A program made the position numbers and the translations under genes. Below, one piece after another: positions 30,183 to 54,394 of a stretch of DNA of 64,000 nt. The notes under the pieces were generated by a model, which was given only the letters and a program-made list of their open reading frames with translations, was not told where the DNA came from and did no database searches. The stretch is from Ruditapes philippinarum (Eukaryota). Each line of letters starts with the position of its first letter. Within the stretch, counting starts at the first letter, position 1. The stretch is from positions 1 to 64,000 of the forward strand of contig NW_026856091.1 in assembly GCF_026571515.1 (NCBI RefSeq). The letters are read 5' to 3'.

Positions 30183-32894
30183 TCACTTTTTTGTAGAAAA
30201 ATCAAAAGATGAATGAAAATATACAAATATATCATCAGGTTTGATATGAAATAGTTTATCTTGATCTTTAACAACATACTGTTTAGCATCATTTCCCTTA
30301 CTTCCAATAAATGGTGAGTCTTGTTCATCATCATTTAACTCTATCTCGCCATCATCTGTTATACAACATTTCAATACTTTCACATTTACAGTATGAGGAA
30401 TACTAGGAAGACTATCAACAAACTTTTGCCATGTTGTCAAAGTCATTGTCACATAATAAAGCTCAATGTCCTTTAAACTGTTCATCTGTAAAGGTGACTG
30501 TATTATATTGTTAGTTAACCTAAAATCATATAACCGAAGCATCCTGAGATTGTGTACTTTGACTAGACTTTCTCCTATCATTGTATGATATAAATGAGAT
30601 TTAAGGTCCCGGTCTGCATGTAATTCAAGCTCTTTTAATTTGTTAGATTTTCTGATGATTTCAAATATTTTCTTATAATTACATCTTTTCAAATGTGTAT
30701 ATCTAAATATTTCAAGGTTTGTAGTATCAACATCTTTCACACTAACAGCATCACACAAATAAAGGTACTTAAGACATCTTGATAAATTTACATCATGCTG
30801 TTTGAAACAATCACACCTAACTTCATGAAGATGTATTTGTTCAAGTTTACTGATTCCCTCAAGAAAATTACAAAATGTAGTAGTATCGTCATGACTCATT
30901 TTTATATAACTCATTCTTATTGCTACAAGATTTTTCATACGTGGTAGGTTTTTGACAACTGTTCTGCATACTGGAAAATAGGCAAGGGACAGAGATAGCG
31001 ATATTAATGTTAAAGTATTTTTTTTAATTATCTCTGAAGTGCATTTGTTAATCTCATCAATCATCTTTGTATAACTCTGTATAGTATTATCATTTTGTGT
31101 GCTTGAAAACAATTGGCGTTGAATTGCAGATTGGAATGTCATTTCAAGTTTTTCAAGATGTTGAAACATTGGCAAATATTTTATAAATATAACATTGTCT
31201 GTGTTGCTGTAATTTACACGAATAGACAGAACAGAGTCAGTAGCAATTTGTTTCAGATCAATTCTTGAATAAACATTATCACAGAACTGATTCAATTCAT
31301 CAATGATCAAATCTCCTAAATAAAATGCAGGAGAAGATGAGTCCTTACATTCTTCAATTAACGCAAACACAAGCTGATGAATATCAGTAAATAATATATT
31401 AATGTTTCTACTTTCAGAATCTGTATAAAATAAATCAGTTTGTGTATTTACAGTTCTCCTGTATTCCTTAACACGAGAGTCTTTTGACACAGTATCAAAT
31501 ATGAATTTTGAGACATGTGTTGCTAATTTGGGTTCTAGGCCACATAGCATAATCATGACACTTGACTGCTCTAAAATGTCATTTACTCTTATACATTTCA
31601 TACATTTCTGAAAAACGCCTTCAATAATCTCATAACAACTTTTTGCTAATTCATCATTTCCTGTACTGTTTAATGAAGCAATTTCTGTATTAAAATTGAT
31701 ACAAATATTCACTGCAGCCAGAAATTCTTGCATTGATTTGTGAATAAAAGAGAATAATGAGCTTGATGGTTCTGATACAGTAAAATTGGGACGTTCATCT
31801 TCTGTCATTATTCCAAGTTTCAAGCAGTTTTTCCTAACTTCATCTGAGATGTCTAGTTTATCCAACAAACAAATGTCAAATGCCAAGGATTTGTTCTTTG
31901 GACAATTAAACAGTGTCTTATAAGCCAATTGTGACATATCATAAATGAAATGGCGGTAAAATTGTAATTTGGTTTTATCTGCTAAATATTTAGGAAGATT
32001 AACTTCCTTTTTACCCTTGTCTCGACCATTTGTTTGTGCAGTTTTCATATCATTCCATGCAAAGAAAAGTTCCAACATGCCCGTGTAGATGGCAGCTCTT
32101 GAGGTTTTATCAAGTTTATCATCATACCATAGACAAATCAATTGTTGAAGTATAATTGGTACCTGTTTTAAACTTCCAAGGGATTTTTCTCTAAGCTTTG
32201 CCCTACAGTCTCTTGCGTCTTTATTAGCATGTTTTCTATTATTTAATTGTGAGACTGTCCTATTTACCATTTCCCTTTCACATTTAAAATCAAACCCTTT
32301 TAGTTTCAGTGATTGTTTAATATCAACACCAATTGATCGCAAAGTAAAAAATTTCCATGGACGTGAAGTAGTTACTATTGTGTACTCCTTAAATTTGCTA
32401 TGATCTGGGACATTTTCACAGGACCATTCATCTATGCCATCAAGCAAAATCATAACTCTAGAGGATTCCTTTTCAAGAAGTGTGCTTAAAATGTCCATTT
32501 GATAGCGTTTTTGAAGCATTATATCAATGTCAATGTCCTGATACTGTCTAAGAGGGATGTAAAATACAAATTCAAATTTCTTCATCACCTTTACACCCAT
32601 GAATTTTTGTTCATATGTTTTACTATCATAGTCAAGTTCCTCCTTGGTATAATTCTTGCCTTCAATTTCGTTTGTTTTTGTACCACACAATCCAGCCTGT
32701 TCCCTTTGAATTTGAAAACTAAATTCATCCCACATTTTTATCATTTCTTCATTCAATCCTCCATGTTTTTCTTTTGCACCTCCATTTTCTACATTGTCGC
32801 CCCCATGTTTCTCACTTTCACTTCTATGCTTCTCACGGCCAGCTCCATGTTCTTCATTGTCACCTTCATTTTCTTTATTGTTACGCCTATGTTT
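30183..32894 (-). CDS. NLR-like gene exon 5, distal frame: end of the repeat insert, NACHT C-terminal half, HD1/WHD/HD2 and degenerate LRRs
   Basis: Frame is open from 32894 to TGA at 30183. Motifs: FEFVFYIPLR, Walker B VMILLDGIDE (32427-32456), sensor-1 IVTTSRPW, VPIILQQLICLW, WHD motif FSFIHKSMQEFLAA, LRR-like HLEKLEM, KLEQIHL, KLKELEL, NLRMLRL, SLKDIEL. Confidence 0.93.
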   Translation of the reverse strand, partial: KHRRNNKENEGDNEEHGAGREKHRSESEKHGGDNVENGGAKEKHGGLNEEMIKMWDEFSFQIQREQAGLCGTKTNEIEGKNYTKEELDYDSKTYEQKFMGVKVMKKFEFVFYIPLRQYQDIDIDIMLQKRYQMDILSTLLEKESSRVMILLDGIDEWSCENVPDHSKFKEYTIVTTSRPWKFFTLRSIGVDIKQSLKLKGFDFKCEREMVNRTVSQLNNRKHANKDARDCRAKLREKSLGSLKQVPIILQQLICLWYDDKLDKTSRAAIYTGMLELFFAWNDMKTAQTNGRDKGKKEVNLPKYLADKTKLQFYRHFIYDMSQLAYKTLFNCPKNKSLAFDICLLDKLDISDEVRKNCLKLGIMTEDERPNFTVSEPSSSLFSFIHKSMQEFLAAVNICINFNTEIASLNSTGNDELAKSCYEIIEGVFQKCMKCIRVNDILEQSSVMIMLCGLEPKLATHVSKFIFDTVSKDSRVKEYRRTVNTQTDLFYTDSESRNINILFTDIHQLVFALIEECKDSSSPAFYLGDLIIDELNQFCDNVYSRIDLKQIATDSVLSIRVNYSNTDNVIFIKYLPMFQHLEKLEMTFQSAIQRQLFSSTQNDNTIQSYTKMIDEINKCTSEIIKKNTLTLISLSLSLAYFPVCRTVVKNLPRMKNLVAIRMSYIKMSHDDTTTFCNFLEGISKLEQIHLHEVRCDCFKQHDVNLSRCLKYLYLCDAVSVKDVDTTNLEIFRYTHLKRCNYKKIFEIIRKSNKLKELELHADRDLKSHLYHTMIGESLVKVHNLRMLRLYDFRLTNNIIQSPLQMNSLKDIELYYVTMTLTTWQKFVDSLPSIPHTVNVKVLKCCITDDGEIELNDDEQDSPFIGSKGNDAKQYVVKDQDKLFHIKPDDIFVYFHSSFDFSTKK

Positions 32895-35540
32895 TTAAAC
32901 ATCATTCTACTGCTTCCGCAGTGTCAACCCCCATCTTTTCTTCCCCCAAAATGTTTCCAAACAGCTCTTTGTGTCTTCTTTGCAAACATGTTTTTCATTG
33001 GCATTTTCCGATGTTAAACATCAGTCACTAGTCCTGTCACTGTCACACCCAGTTTTTCCCTTTGTCAACAACATTTTTCCAACAGTCAATTTCATGTTTC
33101 TCACTGTCATCTCCATGTTTTTCATTGTCATGTCCATGTTTGTCATTGTCACCTCCATGTCCTTCATTTTCACCTCCATAATCATCATTCTCACATCCAT
33201 GTTTCTCACTAACACCTCCATGTTCTTCACTGTTACCATCATGTCCTTCACTGTAACCTTCTTGTTCTTCCTTGTCACCTCCATGTTTTTCATTGTCACG
33301 TCCATGTTTCCCACTGTCAACTCCATGTTTTTCATTGTCACCTCCATGTTCTATGCTGTCACCTCCATGTTTTTCATTTTTACCTACTTGTTCTTCCTTG
33401 TCATCGCCATGTTTATTACCTTCATGTCCTTTATTGTCACCACCATGTTCTTCATTGGCACCCCCATGTTTTACACTGTCCCAAAAATGCTTTCCACTGT
33501 CAAAATTATGTTCTTTATTGTCACTTCTATGTTTCTCACTGTCATCTCCATGTTCTTCACTGTCACCATCAGGTTTTTCAGTGTTAATATCATGTCCTTC
33601 ACTGTAACCTTCTTGTTCTTCCTTGCCACTGCGATGTTTTTCAGTGTCAACTCCATGTTTGTCATTGTCACGTCCATGTTTCTCACTGTCACCTCCATTT
33701 TCTTCATTGTCACCTCCACGTTCTTCACTGTTAACTTCATGTTCGTAATTGTCACCTCCATTTCGTTCAGTGTCACATACATGCTTCTCACTGTCACATC
33801 CATGTTCTTCAATGTCACATCCATGTTCTTCATTGCGACTTACTTGTTCTTCCTTGTCACCGCGATGTTTCTCAATGTCACCTACATGTTCTTCATTGTC
33901 ACGTCCATGTTTCTCACTGTCACCTCCATGTTCTTTACTGTCACCTCCATGTTCTTCCTTGTCAACTCCATGTTCTTCACTGTCATGTAATTGTCCTTCC
34001 TTGTCACCGTCATGTTTCACATTTTCACCTCCATGTTCTTCACTGTCAGCTCCAGGTTTTACACTGTCATCTTTATGTTCTTCATTCTCACCTCTTTGTT
34101 TTTTATTCTCACCTCTATGTTCTTTACTGTCACCTTCATTTTCTTCACTGTCACCTACTTGTTCTTTCTTGTCACCGCTAGGTTTCTCAGCGCCACCGTC
34201 ATGTTCTTCATTTTCACTTCCATGTTCTGCATCGTCACCTCCATATTCTTCACTATCACTTCCTTTTTTTTCACTGTCACCTCCGAGTTCTTCACTGCCA
34301 CTCCCATGTTCTTCATTGCCACGTCCATGTTTTTCATTGTCACCTTCATGTCCTTCATTCTCACCAGCATGTTCATCATTGTCACCTACTTGTACTTCCT
34401 TGTCAGGTCCATGTTTCTCACTGTCACCTCCATGTTCTTCATTTTCAGGTCCATGTTCTTCATTGTCACGTCCATGTTTCTCACTGTCATCTCCATGTTT
34501 TTCACTGTCATCTCCATGTTTCTCACTGTCACCTCCATGTTCTTCATTTTCAGGTCCATGTTCTTCATTGTCACGTCCATGTTCTACATTGTCACCCTTA
34601 TGTGTTTCATTGTCACCTCTAAGTGCTTTATTGTCACCTCCATTATTGTATTTGTCACTTCCTTGTTCCTTAGTTACCTCTTCATTTACAACGTCAATTA
34701 CATGTTCTTTATGTTTGTCATTGCCTTCTTCATTTTCATTGCCACATCCATCCTTATTATTATTGCCACCTCCATCATTTTTGTCTTTGTTTTCTTTATT
34801 TTCAAAGTCTCCATCATGTTCTACATTTACCTTTTCATTTACAATGTCACCTTTATGTTTTTCATTCTTACCCTCATGTTTTTCAGTGTCACCTGCATGT
34901 TCTTCATTGTCACTTACTTGTTCTTCCTTGTCTGCGCCATGTTTCTCACTGTCACGTCCATGTTCTGCATTGTCAACTCCATGTTCTTCATTGTCACCTC
35001 CATTACCTTCATTGTCACATACTTGTTCTTCCATGTCACTGCGATGTTTCTCAATGTCACTTCCATGTTCTTCATTGTAACTTCCATGTTCTTCATTGTC
35101 ACGTCCATGTTCTTCATTGTCACCCCCATGTTCTTCAGTCTCACCAGCATGTTTTTCACTGTCACCTACTTGTTCTTCTTTGTCACGTTCATGTTTCTCA
35201 CTGTCACCTCCATGTTCTTCATTTTTTCCTCCAAGCTCTTCATTTTCACGTCCATGCTCTTCATTGTCACCTTTATGTTTTTCATTGTCACCTCCATGTG
35301 TTTCATTGTCGCCTCCATGTTCCTCAGTTACATCTTCATTTACAACGTTAATTACATGTTCTTTATGTTTTTCATTGCCTAGTTCATTTGCATTGCCACC
35401 TCCATTTTTTTCATTATTGCCACCTCCATTTTTTTCTTTGCTTTCTTTATTTTCAAAGTCTCCATAATGTTCCTCATTTACCTTTTCATTTGCAATGTCA
35501 CCTTTATGTTTTTTATTACCATCCTCATTTTCAATTTCAT
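32760..35540 (-). repeat. Coding 21-bp tandem repeat encoding (GGDNEEH/GxDSEKH)n, about 120-130 units
   Basis: The plus-strand unit TGTCACCTCCATGTTCTTCAT recurs throughout and translates to acidic Gly/His heptads in the NLR frame. Confidence 0.95.
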
Positions 35541-35849
35541 CTTTAAGTTTCTCACTGTGTGCCAAACACCAACAGTTGACTAGATATTTACAAAAACTAG
35601 TTTTTCCTGACCCTGCATCGCCAACAAGATATACAGATTTTTGGGGGATTCCGTTCTTTGTGAAGATTTCTGACATTGTTTTAACCTCCACCTCCTCTGT
35701 CTCACCCTTTTCTCCTTCTTTCTCGCTCGTTATTGTGGGTCTAATATAAATCTCACTAAAGCTACATTTTCCATGGTGTGGTTGTACAGGTGTTGTAGGA
35801 ACTTGCAGCAGGGTTTTGTGATACTGATCCATAAGCTTTTTCCTCATTG
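33043..35849 (-). CDS. NLR-like gene exon 5, proximal frame: pre-NACHT helix, Walker A and the repeat insert
   Basis: Acceptor TTAATTACAG at 35850-35851, phase 1 (G|CA = Ala). FSEIYIRP pre-NACHT motif, Walker A GDAGSGKT (35599-35622), then heptad repeats. The frame ends at TGA 33043-33045 in a garbled patch. Confidence 0.9.
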
Positions 35850-36634
35850 CTGTAATTAAGATACTTAATATTAAATTAAACTGACACAGAAAAAAAGTAA
35901 ATAATACAAAAAATTAGTATAGACCCGGATAAATTATCTCAAGCCTTAAACATACAATGTAAAAAAGAAAGACAACCGTTTATTCCATGTTCTCTTAACA
36001 TCAACAAAGTTCAATGTACTGCACAAAACACGAAAAATCAGTCAGATACTTTTTAAATATAATTCTATTTTTCTTTTCTTTAAATACTTAACATTACTTG
36101 TCAATCTATTGCGTTATTCTTTGTTTAAAATAATAATACACATATTAACAAAAGAAGCATTGCATTCAATGAACGCAACCCATTATTAAACACAATTACA
36201 AAGCTTATCCCTCGGTTTCGCTTCAGACGTGTTATGGAACTGATTCATGTTTATTGGTCACAAATCAAAACGAGTCAATCTAAATATAAATGTATTAACC
36301 GGAAGTTTACGAAAATATGTTCTTTAATCAGCGAACATGAAAAGTGTCCGTATATGTACGCTAACCAATCGCCGAAGACGATAAATATATAGATTATGCA
36401 GAAATGCATCAATGAATCACGTATTATGCAAACCTTACCTTACGTATTGTACATAGCCTGATGACGTATTACACATTTATTTAAGATGAATTGAAACTAA
36501 AAGTCATTTTGTATGAAGACACATTTAAAATCCAACCGCGTTTCGGGCTTACACTCGCGCTTTGGATTTTTGCAGGCCCAAATGCGATTTTACCTGCCTC
36601 TGGTATCGAGCGTGTGCCTTCTTTGCAGATTGCA

Positions 36635-39600
36635 GAATATAACATACCTGTTTAAGCCATTACATATATTGTATAAAATTCCTTATTAATGTTTTTCATA
36701 TCATATAAAACATATCTAATTTTGTTTTTTGATATTCTATATTACATACCTAATTTAGCCTTTCTTTATTTGAATAAAACACCTTAATTGGCATTTTAAT
36801 ATTTTATATAACATTACCGACTTAGTCTTTTCATATTTTATATATTAATATATTTGATTTAGCCTTTTAACATTTATATAACGAACATGATTAAGGCTTT
36901 TCATACTCTACAAAACAAACCTAATAAACGCATTTCATATTTTATATACTATGCCTGATTTTCATATTCTCCATGACATAATGATTTACAATTAGTCTTT
37001 TCACATTCAATAAATCATAGCCTATTCATAACCATTTAACATACCTGATTCAGTCGTTCTTTATTTTATTTAACATATTCTATATAACATGCATGACTTA
37101 GGCTTTTCATATTCTTTCATTATTTCACTGGATAAGCCTATTTATTTTTTAAAAAATGTACCTGACTTGGCTTTTTCATATTCTATATAGCAAACATGAT
37201 TAAGCGTTTTCATGTTCTTTATATTACACCTGATTTAGCCTTTTCATATTGTATATAACATGCATGACTTTGACTTTTCATATTCTTTTTTTACGTAAAT
37301 GATTACGCCTAATTACTTTCTGTAAAATATACCTGATATAGCCATCTTATACTTTATATAAATTACATGATTTAACCTTTTCAAATTCTATATAACATTC
37401 CTGATTGAGTCTTTTTTTTTTCTTTTTTAAGATGCCTGACTTAGGATTTTCATATTCTACATAACTTACCAGATTTAGCTTTTTCAAATTCTATATACTA
37501 TACATGATTTCGTCTTTTCATATATGATATAAATTACCAGATTTAGCAATTTCATGTTCTATAAAACATCCTGATTTAGCCATTTTCTACAAACCTGATT
37601 GTGGCTATTTATTTCTTTGAAAAAAACCTGAGTTAGCCATTTCAAATTCTATATATTAACATATCAAATTTAGCCTTTTCATATTCTATATAACATACGT
37701 GATAAAGCCTTTTCAAAATTTTTATAACATACCTGATTTGGCTTTTTCGTTTATTATGTAACTTGCCTAATTTATCCTTTTCATATGATATATTGTCACA
37801 AAGTAAACCATTTCATAAATGCTCAGAAGTGCTTTAAGTACTTTGATTTTTACATAATTCGTAAGTGCTCAGAAGTGCTCTCAGTACTTTGATTTTTGTA
37901 GTATTCTATTCATGCCGAACCTCAGTTTTATACTAAATACAATGTACATTATTGTATCATCTTTTTGTAAAATTCAGAGTTATCGAGTGAAATTATTTAT
38001 TTCAGTATTTTGATCTATTGCTTAAATTTCTTGGTATCATTTCAAGTATGTTGACATATTTTTCATAAAATTCGGTCCAGTAATAAGAAAGTTAGATTTT
38101 TGTGATAAAGTGTAAATTTATTTATGGTCTATTAATTTGATATTACAGGCCTGTATATTTTGTTATACATGCGTTCTGGAATGCAAAAAATCGTAAAAGT
38201 TATGTTTCACGCTTTCTACTCGGGGGAACTATGCATAATGTATATATTGAACGATTTTAAATCTTCTTTGGGTCTCACATTTAGACGTGTAAAGACGCAC
38301 AAGGTCATTATGACAGACCAATTTATTTTTGTTGTGTAAATTTGAAGCTTGCGCAAGGTAAGTTTTTCTTTTCTTCTTGTTTTATTTAGTAAATTTTTGT
38401 TATTTCAGAAGATCGTTATTCAGTTAATTTTTCCTTACATAATCGTTTTGTATTTTTTTTTTTTTTTTTTTGCATTTTTGACAGTATTTGTTTGTTCTCC
38501 AAACTTTCGTCTTCTGTAGAGTTAGGACTCTAGTGTTTCATTCATTACTTGAATATTGGTAATCTGTTTATTATCATTGATAGTTGTTGTTATGTATGGA
38601 AGGCCGTTAACGCATTATTTTATCATACATATATTTCATTTATATTTACTAAACTAAGTTTTCATGTTCTTGTTTAATACAGTTAGTATTTTTATAATTG
38701 AGTCTGCTGCAGATGTTTTTTATATAATTCTTATTTTTTTAAGTAATTTTCGTATCACTTCACATCATCATTATTTTTTTTTTGTACGAAATAATATGGA
38801 TTCGATTCAAGGATGGATTTTGTCGATGTTTAGGTGGCACCCGGTCTTGCTTCATGTTTTATATCTTACATCGTGCTACGATGTAATATCAACGTTGAAT
38901 TTACTTTACCGATGTGTATGGCGTTCCATAAGGAACATCATTTTTTTAGAAACTTTGTTTATAGAAATCCGACAAAGGTCCGGCTATGCCAAAGGGACAT
39001 ATTTATACCCTTATATTTGTGTACCATGGATATTTACCATGTTTTATATTTTGTAGCTTCTACTCGGAGGATTCACCTGCAATTTTGTATCACGCATGTG
39101 TTCAACATAGCGACGATAGTGGATATTGTGACGTAGCGACGCAGTCTTGGATCTACACTCTGTAGACAGTACAGAATCGATCTTTCTGCTTTGAATGGGC
39201 CACATCTGGAGATTGTGACGTAGAGACCCCACATCCACAGTCTTGGATCTACACTCTGTAGAATCAATCTTCTGCTTTGGATGGGTCACATCTCGAGCTT
39301 CAGTGTATTTTTTTTAGTTAAGTCACCGGGACAAAGTGCTATTCGACAGGACACGGAACTTTAATTTATTTTGTTTTTCTCTTTTCATTCATTGCTTATC
39401 ATTTAATTTCATTTATAAATATTCATTTATTTTTGTAAATATATATTTAAATAGTGTGTACTGAGTTGTGCTTTGTTTTTTTATGGTAGTTGTGATCAGC
39501 CTGTGTTCCATCGAAGTCCATAATGTGACATATATATCATACCTGATTTAGAATTTTCATATATTATATAACACACCTGACTGAGGCTTCCATAATCTAC

Positions 39601-52265: not shown

Positions 52266-52935
52266 CTATTGAATAGAGAACACAGATTCAATATTTCTAT
52301 GCATAAATATTCAGTGCTCTGCAATCATAATTATTTTGTTGAAAATTGTTTAGGTAATTACCTACATATAAGATGTAATCATGAGTTATTTTTCATGTCT
52401 TATTTTTGTCATTCAATTTGAGAAAAAGACAAATTGTAAAATTTAATTTTGGGAAAAATATGCCAGCGTTCAAGATGTTAAAATGCTTTATGAACTCAAT
52501 AAATCTTATTGAAACTGCTCAGAAATTAAAAGATATCCGAAACGTCCAAAATGCTATTGCACACCAAATACAAAATACCTTTTCCTAGGAAATAACCGAT
52601 CTCAGGATCGGGAATTTGTTTTAGATTAGGAAAGAAAGAACACAATTTAGATTGAGAATAAGGCTTATATTTGGACCCATGAGATATGGGGAAAAGAACA
52701 TGCATACAAACAGTAAATATTAACCACAATTCTTGTGAATTGTTACAATAAAATGTTGCATCAAAAAAGATTGGTGATTTTTTTATACATTTGTTGTGAA
52801 TCATTAGAGTGTATATTACTTCATTACCTTAATAGTTAAATTTTCATTTTCAATTTTACTTTAATGCTGAATAAACAGCATTAACATTAAAATAGAGCTT
52901 ATAAAAGATAAATAAATTGTGTTTTAATGATTTAC

Positions 52936-53517
52936 CTTTGACAAAAGATTGTTTGTTCCTGTGACATTGCATCCAATGTGGCTATGAAAATACTGGTTAT
53001 TTATCAATACATGTAATAACCCAGTAGAATCAGTTGCACTAGCAGATTGCCTGTCCTCGTACCCTGGAGCATTTATAAAACATTTACAAATGCTCCAAGG
53101 GTCTATCGTCCACTGTTGAGCATCAGTGTTTTTCCAGTAAGGTGAAGGTGGTGAGGATGCATGCTGCTGCACAATATAGTCATAGATTGCGCCACAAATG
53201 TTGTTCGGACATGCAATTTTGACCTTAAGAAAGCAACAGCTGCATTTTACTTGCCCAAAGGGACAAACCTTGTTTCTAGCATTCCCAAGATCTGGCTTAT
53301 GATCTGGCTTAAGAGTTTCTACTCGACAGCTGCCACACGTCACAGTTGATGGTAATGATTTTTTTGTAGACCTAATATTTTGTAAGATATCCTTATGTTG
53401 TTGATAAGCAATGTCATTACAAAATGGTGTGAGTCCTTCTTTTAAATATCTAAGTCCTAAACCAGCCTTTACCCACTGTCTGTATTTGTCATTCTCTAAC
53501 TGAAGTTGATGTGCCAT
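52936..53517 (-). CDS. NLR-like gene first coding exon, DUF4559/CXorf38-like N-terminal domain
   Basis: Acceptor at 53533-53534, ATG at 53517, 194 codons, donor AAG|GTAAAT. Motifs YRQWVKAGLGLRYLKEGLTPFC, Cys cluster, WKNTDAQQWTIDPWSICKCFI, DSTGLLHVLIN. The acceptor implies an upstream non-coding exon, which was not located. Confidence 0.9.
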
Positions 53518-54394
53518 CCTGGTACTCAATATCTAAACAAAAACAATTTTTAAAAGGTAATATTCTGGCCTTTTACATGCATGTAACACTATTTTGGCAT
53601 AAGAAAACTACAGAGCCATGATGAACATTACTTTATTTTTTAGGATCTTAATGACAAGGAACAATTAATATTGATAGCTATGAATGAAAAGCAGATATAA
53701 TTTCTTTATCTTAAAATGCTTTCACAATGTTCTTATCCGCATCGGAAATGAGGCAAATGTCAACATTTTCTATATTTTGTCGAACTGTCCAGAGATGACC
53801 AATATTCGAGCAAACTTGAGCAAATATAGTCTTGCAATCATTGTTGTGATTTTATGTTTTCAGCAATTATTTCTTCCGATTTGGACTTGCCTTAAGTCTG
53901 TTATTGTTGGTTATCAAATTATTTATCTGATTAAATTTAACAGTACATACTAGGGGCCTATTCTAATTGCTGGCAACAACTCAATTTAACCATGATTTGC
54001 ACGGGGGAGCAATTTCCGCTACCGTAAGAAAAATACATCAGCTCTGTCAAAGCCATAAGTGATGAAGAAACAATACATACCGTGGAGGCGATAAGTGACT
54101 TATCGAGCCTTAGTTCATCATAAGGGTTTTCCATTTTAAAATGAAAGTTAAGGAAAGTGTGTGCCCGTTGAATCCCTTTTACGCTATATTCCGAAAAAGG
54201 GAGCTTGTTGAAAAAGCCTTCGCCTTATTGACCTGGTTCAAAGGTGAAGGCCCGGGCGCCTGATGGAAATTGTCATAAGGGTTGAATGCTTTATTTTTTG
54301 AGACCGACAATAAACTCAGTAACAGACTCACTTAAAACCTAAAAAAAGAACGGTCAACTTGTTAAACATGGTCATATTGAGACGCTTACTCTTT

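Follow-up and report, generated by a model that had tools for sequence, protein, structure and literature searches.

The stretch of Ruditapes philippinarum DNA examined here (64,000 nucleotides, positions 1 to 64,000 of contig NW_026856091.1; hereafter the window) contains the gene LOC132745371, whose protein (XP_060590261.1, P0080; 1,786 amino acids (aa)) is listed in RefSeq as "uncharacterized" and is laid out as a CXorf38-type HEPN domain (DUF4559, PF15112), a coiled coil, a NACHT domain and a C-terminus resembling leucine-rich repeats (LRR). Inside the NACHT domain, between its Walker A motif and the Walker B one, lies a long array of 21-bp repeats. The account that we favour, to which we assign a probability of roughly 0.7, is that this array is an expressed, disordered, strongly acidic, Gly/His-rich coding loop that has grown in the link between helix alpha1 and strand beta2 of NACHT. 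The array would have arisen from a short acidic linker such as is found in insert-less relatives, and would have expanded as 21-bp units, and also larger blocks, underwent replication slippage and unequal recombination. Since 21 is divisible by 3, the downstream domains would stay in frame throughout, and the core of the nucleoside triphosphatase (NTPase) would tolerate the insert because, as in P-loop folds generally, the alpha1-beta2 link exits at the sheet's edge, on the side facing away from the nucleotide pocket. The loop would most likely serve as a tolerated polyanionic "bristle", which by its charge and bulk might at most tune how the receptor self-associates or is activated; it is less likely to be a dedicated ligand-binding domain.

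The Walker A motif, or P-loop (GDAGSGKT, 35599..35622, fitting GxxGxGK[ST]), and the Walker B motif (ILLDGIDEW, 32424..32450, fitting hhhhDGhDE) were both located by translation of the minus strand, on which all coding features of this gene lie. They are separated by 3,172 nt, i.e. 1,057 codons, in agreement with the motif coordinates and the gap of about 3.15 kb reported in the original prediction, which was also correct in stating that these motifs normally lie less than about 100 aa apart: the 129 family proteins compared have a median spacing of 87 aa (5-95% range 81-324). Helix alpha1 (SFCKYLVNCWCLAHSE, 35551..35598) follows the P-loop, and alignment with the insert-less relative L062 and with paralogues places the start of the insert directly after it. 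On the other side, strand beta2 (KKFEFVFYIPLR, 32547..32582), which a profile search of solved structures aligned with FQHVFYFSCR of NLRP1, marks the return of the Pfam NACHT profile, at its position 31. Profile positions 3-30 correspond to residues 72-99 of a first open reading frame (ORF A) and positions 31-162 to a second one (32756-30183, 857 aa), which contains the last repeats, beta2, Walker B, the helical domains and an LRR-like end; because the profile is split across the two ORFs at this point, the insert falls exactly between the adjoining positions 30 and 31. Taken separately, the two pieces score 17.1 and 15.3 bits against PF05729 (gathering cut-off 26.7), while the paralogue P0001 reaches 35.1 bits over profile positions 32-162 alone, and in insert-bearing proteins Pfam reports only the part of NACHT that follows the insert. 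A phmmer search of solved structures with an insert-less homologue returned no match, whereas a family profile did match the nucleotide-binding domain of NOD2 and the beta2/Walker B region of NLRP1.

Most of the insert is a 21-bp (7-aa) array, G-G-D-[NS]-E-[EK]-H, at 33093..35326, for which Tandem Repeats Finder gives 106.5 copies with 70% matches and a score of 1535; the last heptad units, at 32759..32886 (Tandem Repeats Finder row 32759-32916), are in the frame of the downstream part of NACHT. Before the array comes a non-heptad acidic segment rich in Lys, Asn and Gly (35327..35550), which resembles the conserved middle module of paralogue inserts. A second copy of it stands inside the array near 34680-34900, and the stretches 34754-34880 and 35405-35531, 83% identical and spaced 651 nt, represent an internal duplication of a non-heptad acidic segment of about 65 aa. 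The insert ends in a non-repeat stretch (LNEEMIKMWDEF...YEQKFMGVKVM, 32583..32758) that is homologous to the same stretch of the paralogue L009. The original prediction was right that a 21-bp array fills most of the gap between the Walker motifs, but its figure of 120-130 copies was too high, there being about 105-115 true heptads, with the remainder made up of copies of the non-heptad segment and of a degenerate patch. It was also right that Asp, Glu and His recur at fixed places in the heptad: in 95 in-register units with the consensus D-[NS]-E-[EK]-H-G-G, position 1 is D in 68, position 3 is E in 74 and position 5 is H in 70, and the distance from one His to the next is exactly 7 in 50 cases. 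Over the 836 aa scored, the array holds 270 Asp/Glu, 105 Lys/Arg and 81 His, with a net charge of about -165, and 8.6% of its residues are hydrophobic. "Heptad" is used here for a period of seven and not for a coiled coil, as the hydrophobic a and d positions of a coiled coil are absent from the G-G-D-N-E-E-H consensus and no helix is predicted.

Inserts of this kind recur across the clam genome, in which the Walker A piece had at least 150 matches; in about 40 copies, which are 73-83% identical, Walker A is in every case immediately followed by a repeat of this kind. We fetched 40 loci, 37 of which hold both Walker motifs, and in 31 of the 37 the two motifs are joined by one stop-free frame at a spacing of 150-478 aa. 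The insert is retained as coding in the RefSeq models of the window gene and of eight paralogues. The window copy is the longest in the family, with about 1,000 aa between the motifs (1,003 aa in XP_060590261.1, in which the entire array is annotated as coding), as against 83 aa in L062, which together with RefSeq proteins represents the insert-less relatives here. Paralogue inserts are uniformly acidic (isoelectric point 4.1-4.7, Asp plus Glu 27-37%, His 5-10%, Gly 12-20%) and tripartite, consisting of a variable heptad array, a semi-conserved middle module and an Asp/Ser-rich tail; the higher-order units of the heptad arrays differ between paralogues, and the tail is expanded in some. A tree based on the flanks unites the insert-bearing copies in a clade with a support of 100/97. 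Among the 129 family proteins, the long-spaced ones of the heptad-insert type are all from Ruditapes, and in the nearest homologues from Mercenaria the insert is absent, a 16-aa acidic linker standing in its place. Neither a DNA nor a protein search of the clam genome found the repeat outside the paralogous loci of this family of nucleotide-binding, leucine-rich-repeat receptors (NLRs). These sequence comparisons place the insert-bearing genes in a subfamily specific to the Manila clam, whose architecture is HEPN(CXorf38/DUF4559)-coiled coil-NACHT-LRR.

Structure prediction agrees with the placement of the insert in a loop. The receptor modelled with AlphaFold was not that of the window gene but the paralogue P0003, with an alignment of 55 sequences and a predicted template modelling score of 0.71. 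In this model beta1 spans residues 89-93, alpha1 100-115, beta2 326-331 and the Walker B strand 365-370, and the insert (119-305) has no secondary structure and a predicted local distance difference test score (pLDDT) of 24-35, compared with mostly 85-95 in the domains. The model has the NLR fold, comprising the nucleotide-binding domain, helical domains and LRR, and Foldseek matched it to NLRC4 (4KXF, the top match at E 2.7e-22), NOD2, NLRP3 and others, with E of 1e-22 to 1e-14 across these three. When 300 aa of the window's own array were folded alone, almost no structure was obtained and the mean pLDDT was 47. The insert is thus predicted by these models to be a disordered stretch within the alpha1-beta2 loop of an otherwise intact NLRC4-like fold, which, together with the split of the NACHT profile at 30/31, upholds the earlier suggestion of a giant disordered loop grafted onto an NTPase core.

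Evidence for expression comes from contigs of four public runs, belonging to four studies, that were aligned to 30400-36300; their run label, "RNA?", is itself a guess. That the runs are probably RNA is argued from three observations. First, the contigs total 95-170 Mb per run, compared with a genome of 1.41 Gb. Second, contig depth is bounded by the exon, being 8-20 in run X1, 127-356 in X4 and 42-62 in X15 over the gene body, but 3.5-5, 15 and 6, respectively, and zero in X3, at 35916-36300, just upstream of the exon (a drop of 3- to 20-fold, or to zero, past 35916). Third, a contig end at 35840 continues into upstream-exon coding sequence of a paralogue (..YQKVKSEWR; cf. YEKAKSEWRKKL in RefSeq proteins), at a place where an intron acceptor stands in the window. 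About 80% of the array is covered by contigs with 0-3 mismatches (33321-33618, 33669-33914, 33906-34436, 34556-35112 and 35084-35611), and since the paralogues are at most 78% identical within the array, these contigs derive from this locus. The contig at 35084-35611 reaches the base of Walker A, and another, at 32541-32893, runs unbroken from the NACHT part into the last repeats. The depth of array contigs equals or exceeds that of the NACHT and LRR parts and is 3- to 20-fold above that of the adjacent intron, where the latter is not zero.

These contigs speak to the idea that the repeat is an intron whose removal yields a protein with a normal NACHT domain. Removing all that lies between profile positions 30 and 31 would indeed leave the Pfam profile continuous, and GT and AG dinucleotides are present near both ends of the array; yet both borders of the array are crossed unbroken, its depth is at least that of the exon and far above that of the true intron, and among the 15 joints shown, of 23, none removes the array with GT..AG ends (CT..AC on the plus strand). 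Moreover, the frame is stop-free with the insert in 31 paralogues, and the RefSeq models keep it. We regard the intron idea as largely refuted and extremely improbable; splicing out of the repeat was a caution raised with the original prediction, and the probable-RNA contigs retain the repeat.

Over-expansion of the array in the assembly is likewise very improbable. Long-read assemblies can mis-size tandem arrays, and some contigs skip part of this one in frame (net -174 and -195 nt, near 34510-34722), but the units are about 70% alike, which makes each stretch unique, and short-read contigs from four studies yield at least 2 kb of distinct array at 0-3 mismatches. Near-identical pieces of the repeat in four independent studies thus go most of the way towards removing two other earlier reservations, namely that the array is over-expanded or occurs solely in non-expressed alleles. 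The joints responsible for the skips run from 34541 to 34720, 34510 to 34720 and 34534 to 34722, with a few letters between; each net change (-174, -195 and -174 nt) is divisible by 3, and the joints could reflect either length variants that keep the frame or contigs cross-aligned to the duplicated segment. We did not accept them as length alleles, their shorter side being only 21-25 nt and a near-copy being present at 35405-35531. In runs X3 and X4, unique array contigs (33300-35600) are 2-3 times deeper than unique LRR contigs (30850-32270), for which words common to paralogues or shorter transcripts are possible explanations.

The array is read in a minus-strand frame (35847-33043) of 934 aa from the first ATG and 956 codons from stop to stop. 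Over 33043-35560 this coding frame has no internal stop, despite three single-base routes to a stop in each consensus unit; of the remaining minus frames, the one open in the consensus has two such routes per unit and 23 stops over the array, and the plus frames, all three of which are open in the consensus, have 2, 6 and 8 stops. Plus-strand ORFs of 339-463 aa inside the array were rejected as genes, given that the plus frames are open in the consensus and yet carry these stops. The claim of a frame free of stops for more than 800 codons therefore stands, with 956 codons open, but it overlooked a TGA at 33045-33043 and a change of frame before the rest of NACHT. These belong to a degenerate patch of about 170 nt (32887..33061), in which the TGA is joined by a shift of frame and, in the downstream frame, by three stops. 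In the RefSeq model, 33046-32887 is excised as a canonical 160-nt GT..AG intron (..NWV/RNNKEN..), which restores the frame. Each of the four runs has a contig that matches the window exactly over 32541-32893 and diverges from it over 32894-33061 by substitutions and small indels, with a net change of -1 over 32894-33061 and of +6 at 32894-32982. We rebuilt the patch by applying the contig differences (55 letters) to the window, for three run variants and under both deletion conventions, and in every case the array and Walker B came to lie in one open frame; the rebuilt patch is heptad-like and resembles the matching stretch of L009. As the patch is open in the run variants, an intact and expressed version of it probably exists, and the patch in the window may be a real degenerate allele or an assembly flaw. 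A protein homology search with a 181-aa piece spanning the patch junction found no transcript-derived fragment. L009 (C15144:1-3013), the closest relative of the window array, lies on a contig that begins inside the array; its array frame runs without a stop for at least 595 aa, past the point where the window's frame breaks, and its downstream NACHT is scattered over three frames, so that it is either a pseudogene or an error-rich contig.

Several observations weigh against the account that we favour, and one is that the allele assembled in the window is discontinuous, with the stop at 33043, the frame shift and three more stops. This copy might be a decaying or non-functional allele, in which the oversized array marks relaxed constraint and the protein ends after the repeat. 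Decay is also suggested by the branch of the window copy in the flank tree, which at 0.41 is the longest terminal branch within the insert clade, by the shortened open frames of about 45% of close paralogues, and by the shattered downstream NACHT of L009. Still, we consider it unlikely, as both long frames (956 and 857 codons) are intact outside the patch of about 170 nt, the patch is open and heptad-like in the variant from four runs and four studies, and the RefSeq intron of 160 nt spans it with the frame restored. Other adverse points concern the coding loop itself. Between-unit variation, scored in 95 units, is not concentrated at third codon positions, a pattern that fits a young array homogenised by duplication and that says nothing on selection either way. 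The stop-free frame is explained by the need to translate the downstream domains, and usefulness of the repeat is thus not shown by it. The contigs, unstranded and presumed to be RNA, are at most 700 nt long here and do not span the whole array in a single mRNA. Where the loop would lie with respect to the oligomer interface is deduced from what P-loop folds have in common. Lastly, the pooled ratio of nonsynonymous to synonymous substitution rates (dN/dS) over nine pairs, 0.63 in the insert and 0.39 in the flanks, with dN twice as high in the insert and dN/dS below 1 in seven of the nine, comes from repeat alignments, for which this ratio is unreliable; taken at face value, it points to constraint on the insert that is weaker than on the flanks, not absent.

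Regarding origin, insert-less relatives already have a short acidic, His-containing linker at the insert site. Frame-preserving change in length, which the earlier reading expected from a unit length divisible by 3, is seen between paralogues, 31 of 37 being in frame at 150-478 aa, and sister copies are unequal, with Walker spacings of 478 vs 353, 238 vs 345, 396 vs 285 and 234 vs 270 aa. In P0025 (LOC132754431) the native acidic linker and the P-loop helix (SFCKYL.NCWC.AHS) are tandemly duplicated, and in L052/P0081 the P-loop helix is repeated inside the insert; both look like early stages of expansion. Unrelated Asp/Ser-rich low-complexity inserts occupy the same loop in more distant members of the family from Mercenaria (spacings of 357, 149 and 134 aa) and from Ruditapes (179 aa), so that, by sequence comparison, the alpha1-beta2 loop appears to be a recurrent insertion hot spot in the family. 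The longest of the Mercenaria cases, XP_053402872.1 (P0097) of Mercenaria mercenaria, has this loop filled by an unrelated 16-aa repeat (about SDKNGDLVSGKCDDSV), giving the spacing of 357 aa.

More active roles than that of a tolerated bristle may also be considered. The loop could be a polyanionic regulator that keeps the receptor off until a signal arrives, through charge or steric repulsion between NACHT protomers or by occupying the nucleic-acid surface of HEPN. Prothymosin-alpha, an acidic disordered protein, restrains the Apaf-1 apoptosome and provides a precedent. All members of the insert clade keep at least about 150 aa, with a semi-conserved middle module and an Asp/Ser-rich tail beside the array, dN/dS is below 1 in seven of nine pairs, and other subfamilies, as well as Mercenaria, again have acidic inserts in this loop. 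However, this recurrence may reflect a loop that is merely permissive and already acidic, and several-fold length differences between close paralogues fit poorly with a tuned regulator. We consider this reading rather improbable. A broader version, in which the alpha1-beta2 loop would be a second, length-tunable module (autoinhibitor, metal/pH switch or HEPN nucleic-acid mimic) whose turnover has been selected to diversify activation thresholds across some 40 paralogues, with similar inserts having arisen independently in other venerid NLR subfamilies, strikes us as doubtful.

The original prediction also raised the possibility of a His/carboxylate metal or pH sensor, or one might think of a metal buffer. 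The composition invites it, with 81 His at a spacing of seven residues among 270 Asp/Glu in the window array and 5-10% His in all paralogue inserts. On the other hand, the His clusters that are typical of known His-rich metal binders are lacking (over the 836 aa of the array there are no HH, one HxH and two HxxH), the H position is often taken by Q, N, P, L or Y, and the other inserts at this site are Asp/Ser-rich and without His. The metal sensor is therefore unsupported and quite improbable, even though binding by spaced His together with carboxylates stays compatible with the sequence. Its companion proposal, an integrated decoy or protease bait that mimics the host target of a pathogen effector, would accord with hypervariability within an immune receptor family, but DNA and protein searches place the repeat at NLR paralogue loci only and reveal no mimicked host protein in the genome, which leaves the decoy unsupported as well and very improbable.

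Regarding known systems, the clam subfamily shares its fold and motif order with NLRC4 (4KXF), NOD2 (5IRM), NLRP1 and NLRP3, and what sets it apart is the alpha1-beta2 link, which takes up about 15 aa in insert-less relatives (Walker spacing 83-87), in contrast to Walker spacings of 150-478 aa in the paralogues and, in the window gene, of about 1,000 aa. Walker A and B also lie many hundreds of residues apart in ABC ATPases of the SMC/Rad50 type, in which the chain leaves and re-enters the ATPase head; there, however, what separates them is an antiparallel coiled coil that is ordered and has a defined function, unlike the clam array, which has no hydrophobic positions and is predicted to be disordered. 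In fungal NLRs, arrays of WD40, ankyrin or TPR repeats change fast in repeat number and sequence through recombination between units, but these are folded C-terminal sensor domains, whereas the clam repeats are disordered and lie inside the nucleotide-binding domain.

The gene family itself and its architecture are already known. Pearl oyster has more than 50 NACHT proteins with an N-terminal HEPN, and the sections of that study on these genes describe an over-representation in bivalves and high haplotype variability (PMC9646362); these receptors match the window gene in HEPN-NACHT-LRR architecture and in animal group, although the oyster HEPN described there is of the DZIP3 type (PF18738) and that of the clam gene is DUF4559/CXorf38 (PF15112). 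The CXorf38 family has been classed as HEPN, and NACHT fusions are mentioned in the corresponding passages (PMC3710099). The HEPN, NACHT and CXorf38 passages of these two papers do not mention an insert inside NACHT. Low-complexity or repeat inserts are tolerated inside a P-loop NTPase domain, between the Walker motifs, in an AT-rich parasite genome (PMC2674469), yet those affect other NTPase classes as a genome-wide habit, with no NACHT case reported, while the clam insert belongs to one receptor subfamily. A search of the literature on NACHT Walker-motif inserts, clam NLRs and DUF4559 did not find an insert of this kind described in a NACHT domain, and we think that specialists on NLRs would be surprised by how large it is and by its repeated appearance in one loop. 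In NLRs, the nucleotide-binding domain is commonly regarded as a compact, conserved switch, with variability residing in sensor repeats and effector domains; this entire clam subfamily retains, within the switch domain, a disordered polyanion that changes fast and measures 150 to about 1,000 residues, and related clam NLRs have independently expanded the same loop. Should the loop be no more than a passenger, it would point to a site in NACHT that tolerates insertion, of use for engineering and for gene annotation. If instead it modulates activation, it would be a new route to diversify innate receptors in an animal without adaptive immunity.

The insert is part of the large 3' exon of LOC132745371 (30183..35850), which encodes the end of the coiled-coil linker, NACHT with its insert, the helical domains and the LRR-like end up to the stop codon, and whose start follows an acceptor read as ttacag/CA at 35851/35850. 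An upstream exon (52924..53529) encodes the N-terminal CXorf38-type HEPN domain, with 35.1 bits for PF15112 (cut-off 27); DUF4559 is also found in the RefSeq protein and in the paralogues, P0001 reaching 59 bits. Compared with the window at 30183-32756, XP_060590261.1 is missing two internal stretches of the continuous 857-codon ORF, of about 140 aa and about 225 aa, the first of which includes the conserved SFIHKSMQEFLAAV helix, and the RefSeq protein is probably mis-spliced over these two stretches. The intron directly upstream of the large exon contains a 34-bp tandem array of its own (37074-37793, also 36692-36756), with 21 copies, 62% matches and higher-order periods of 103 and 171 bp.

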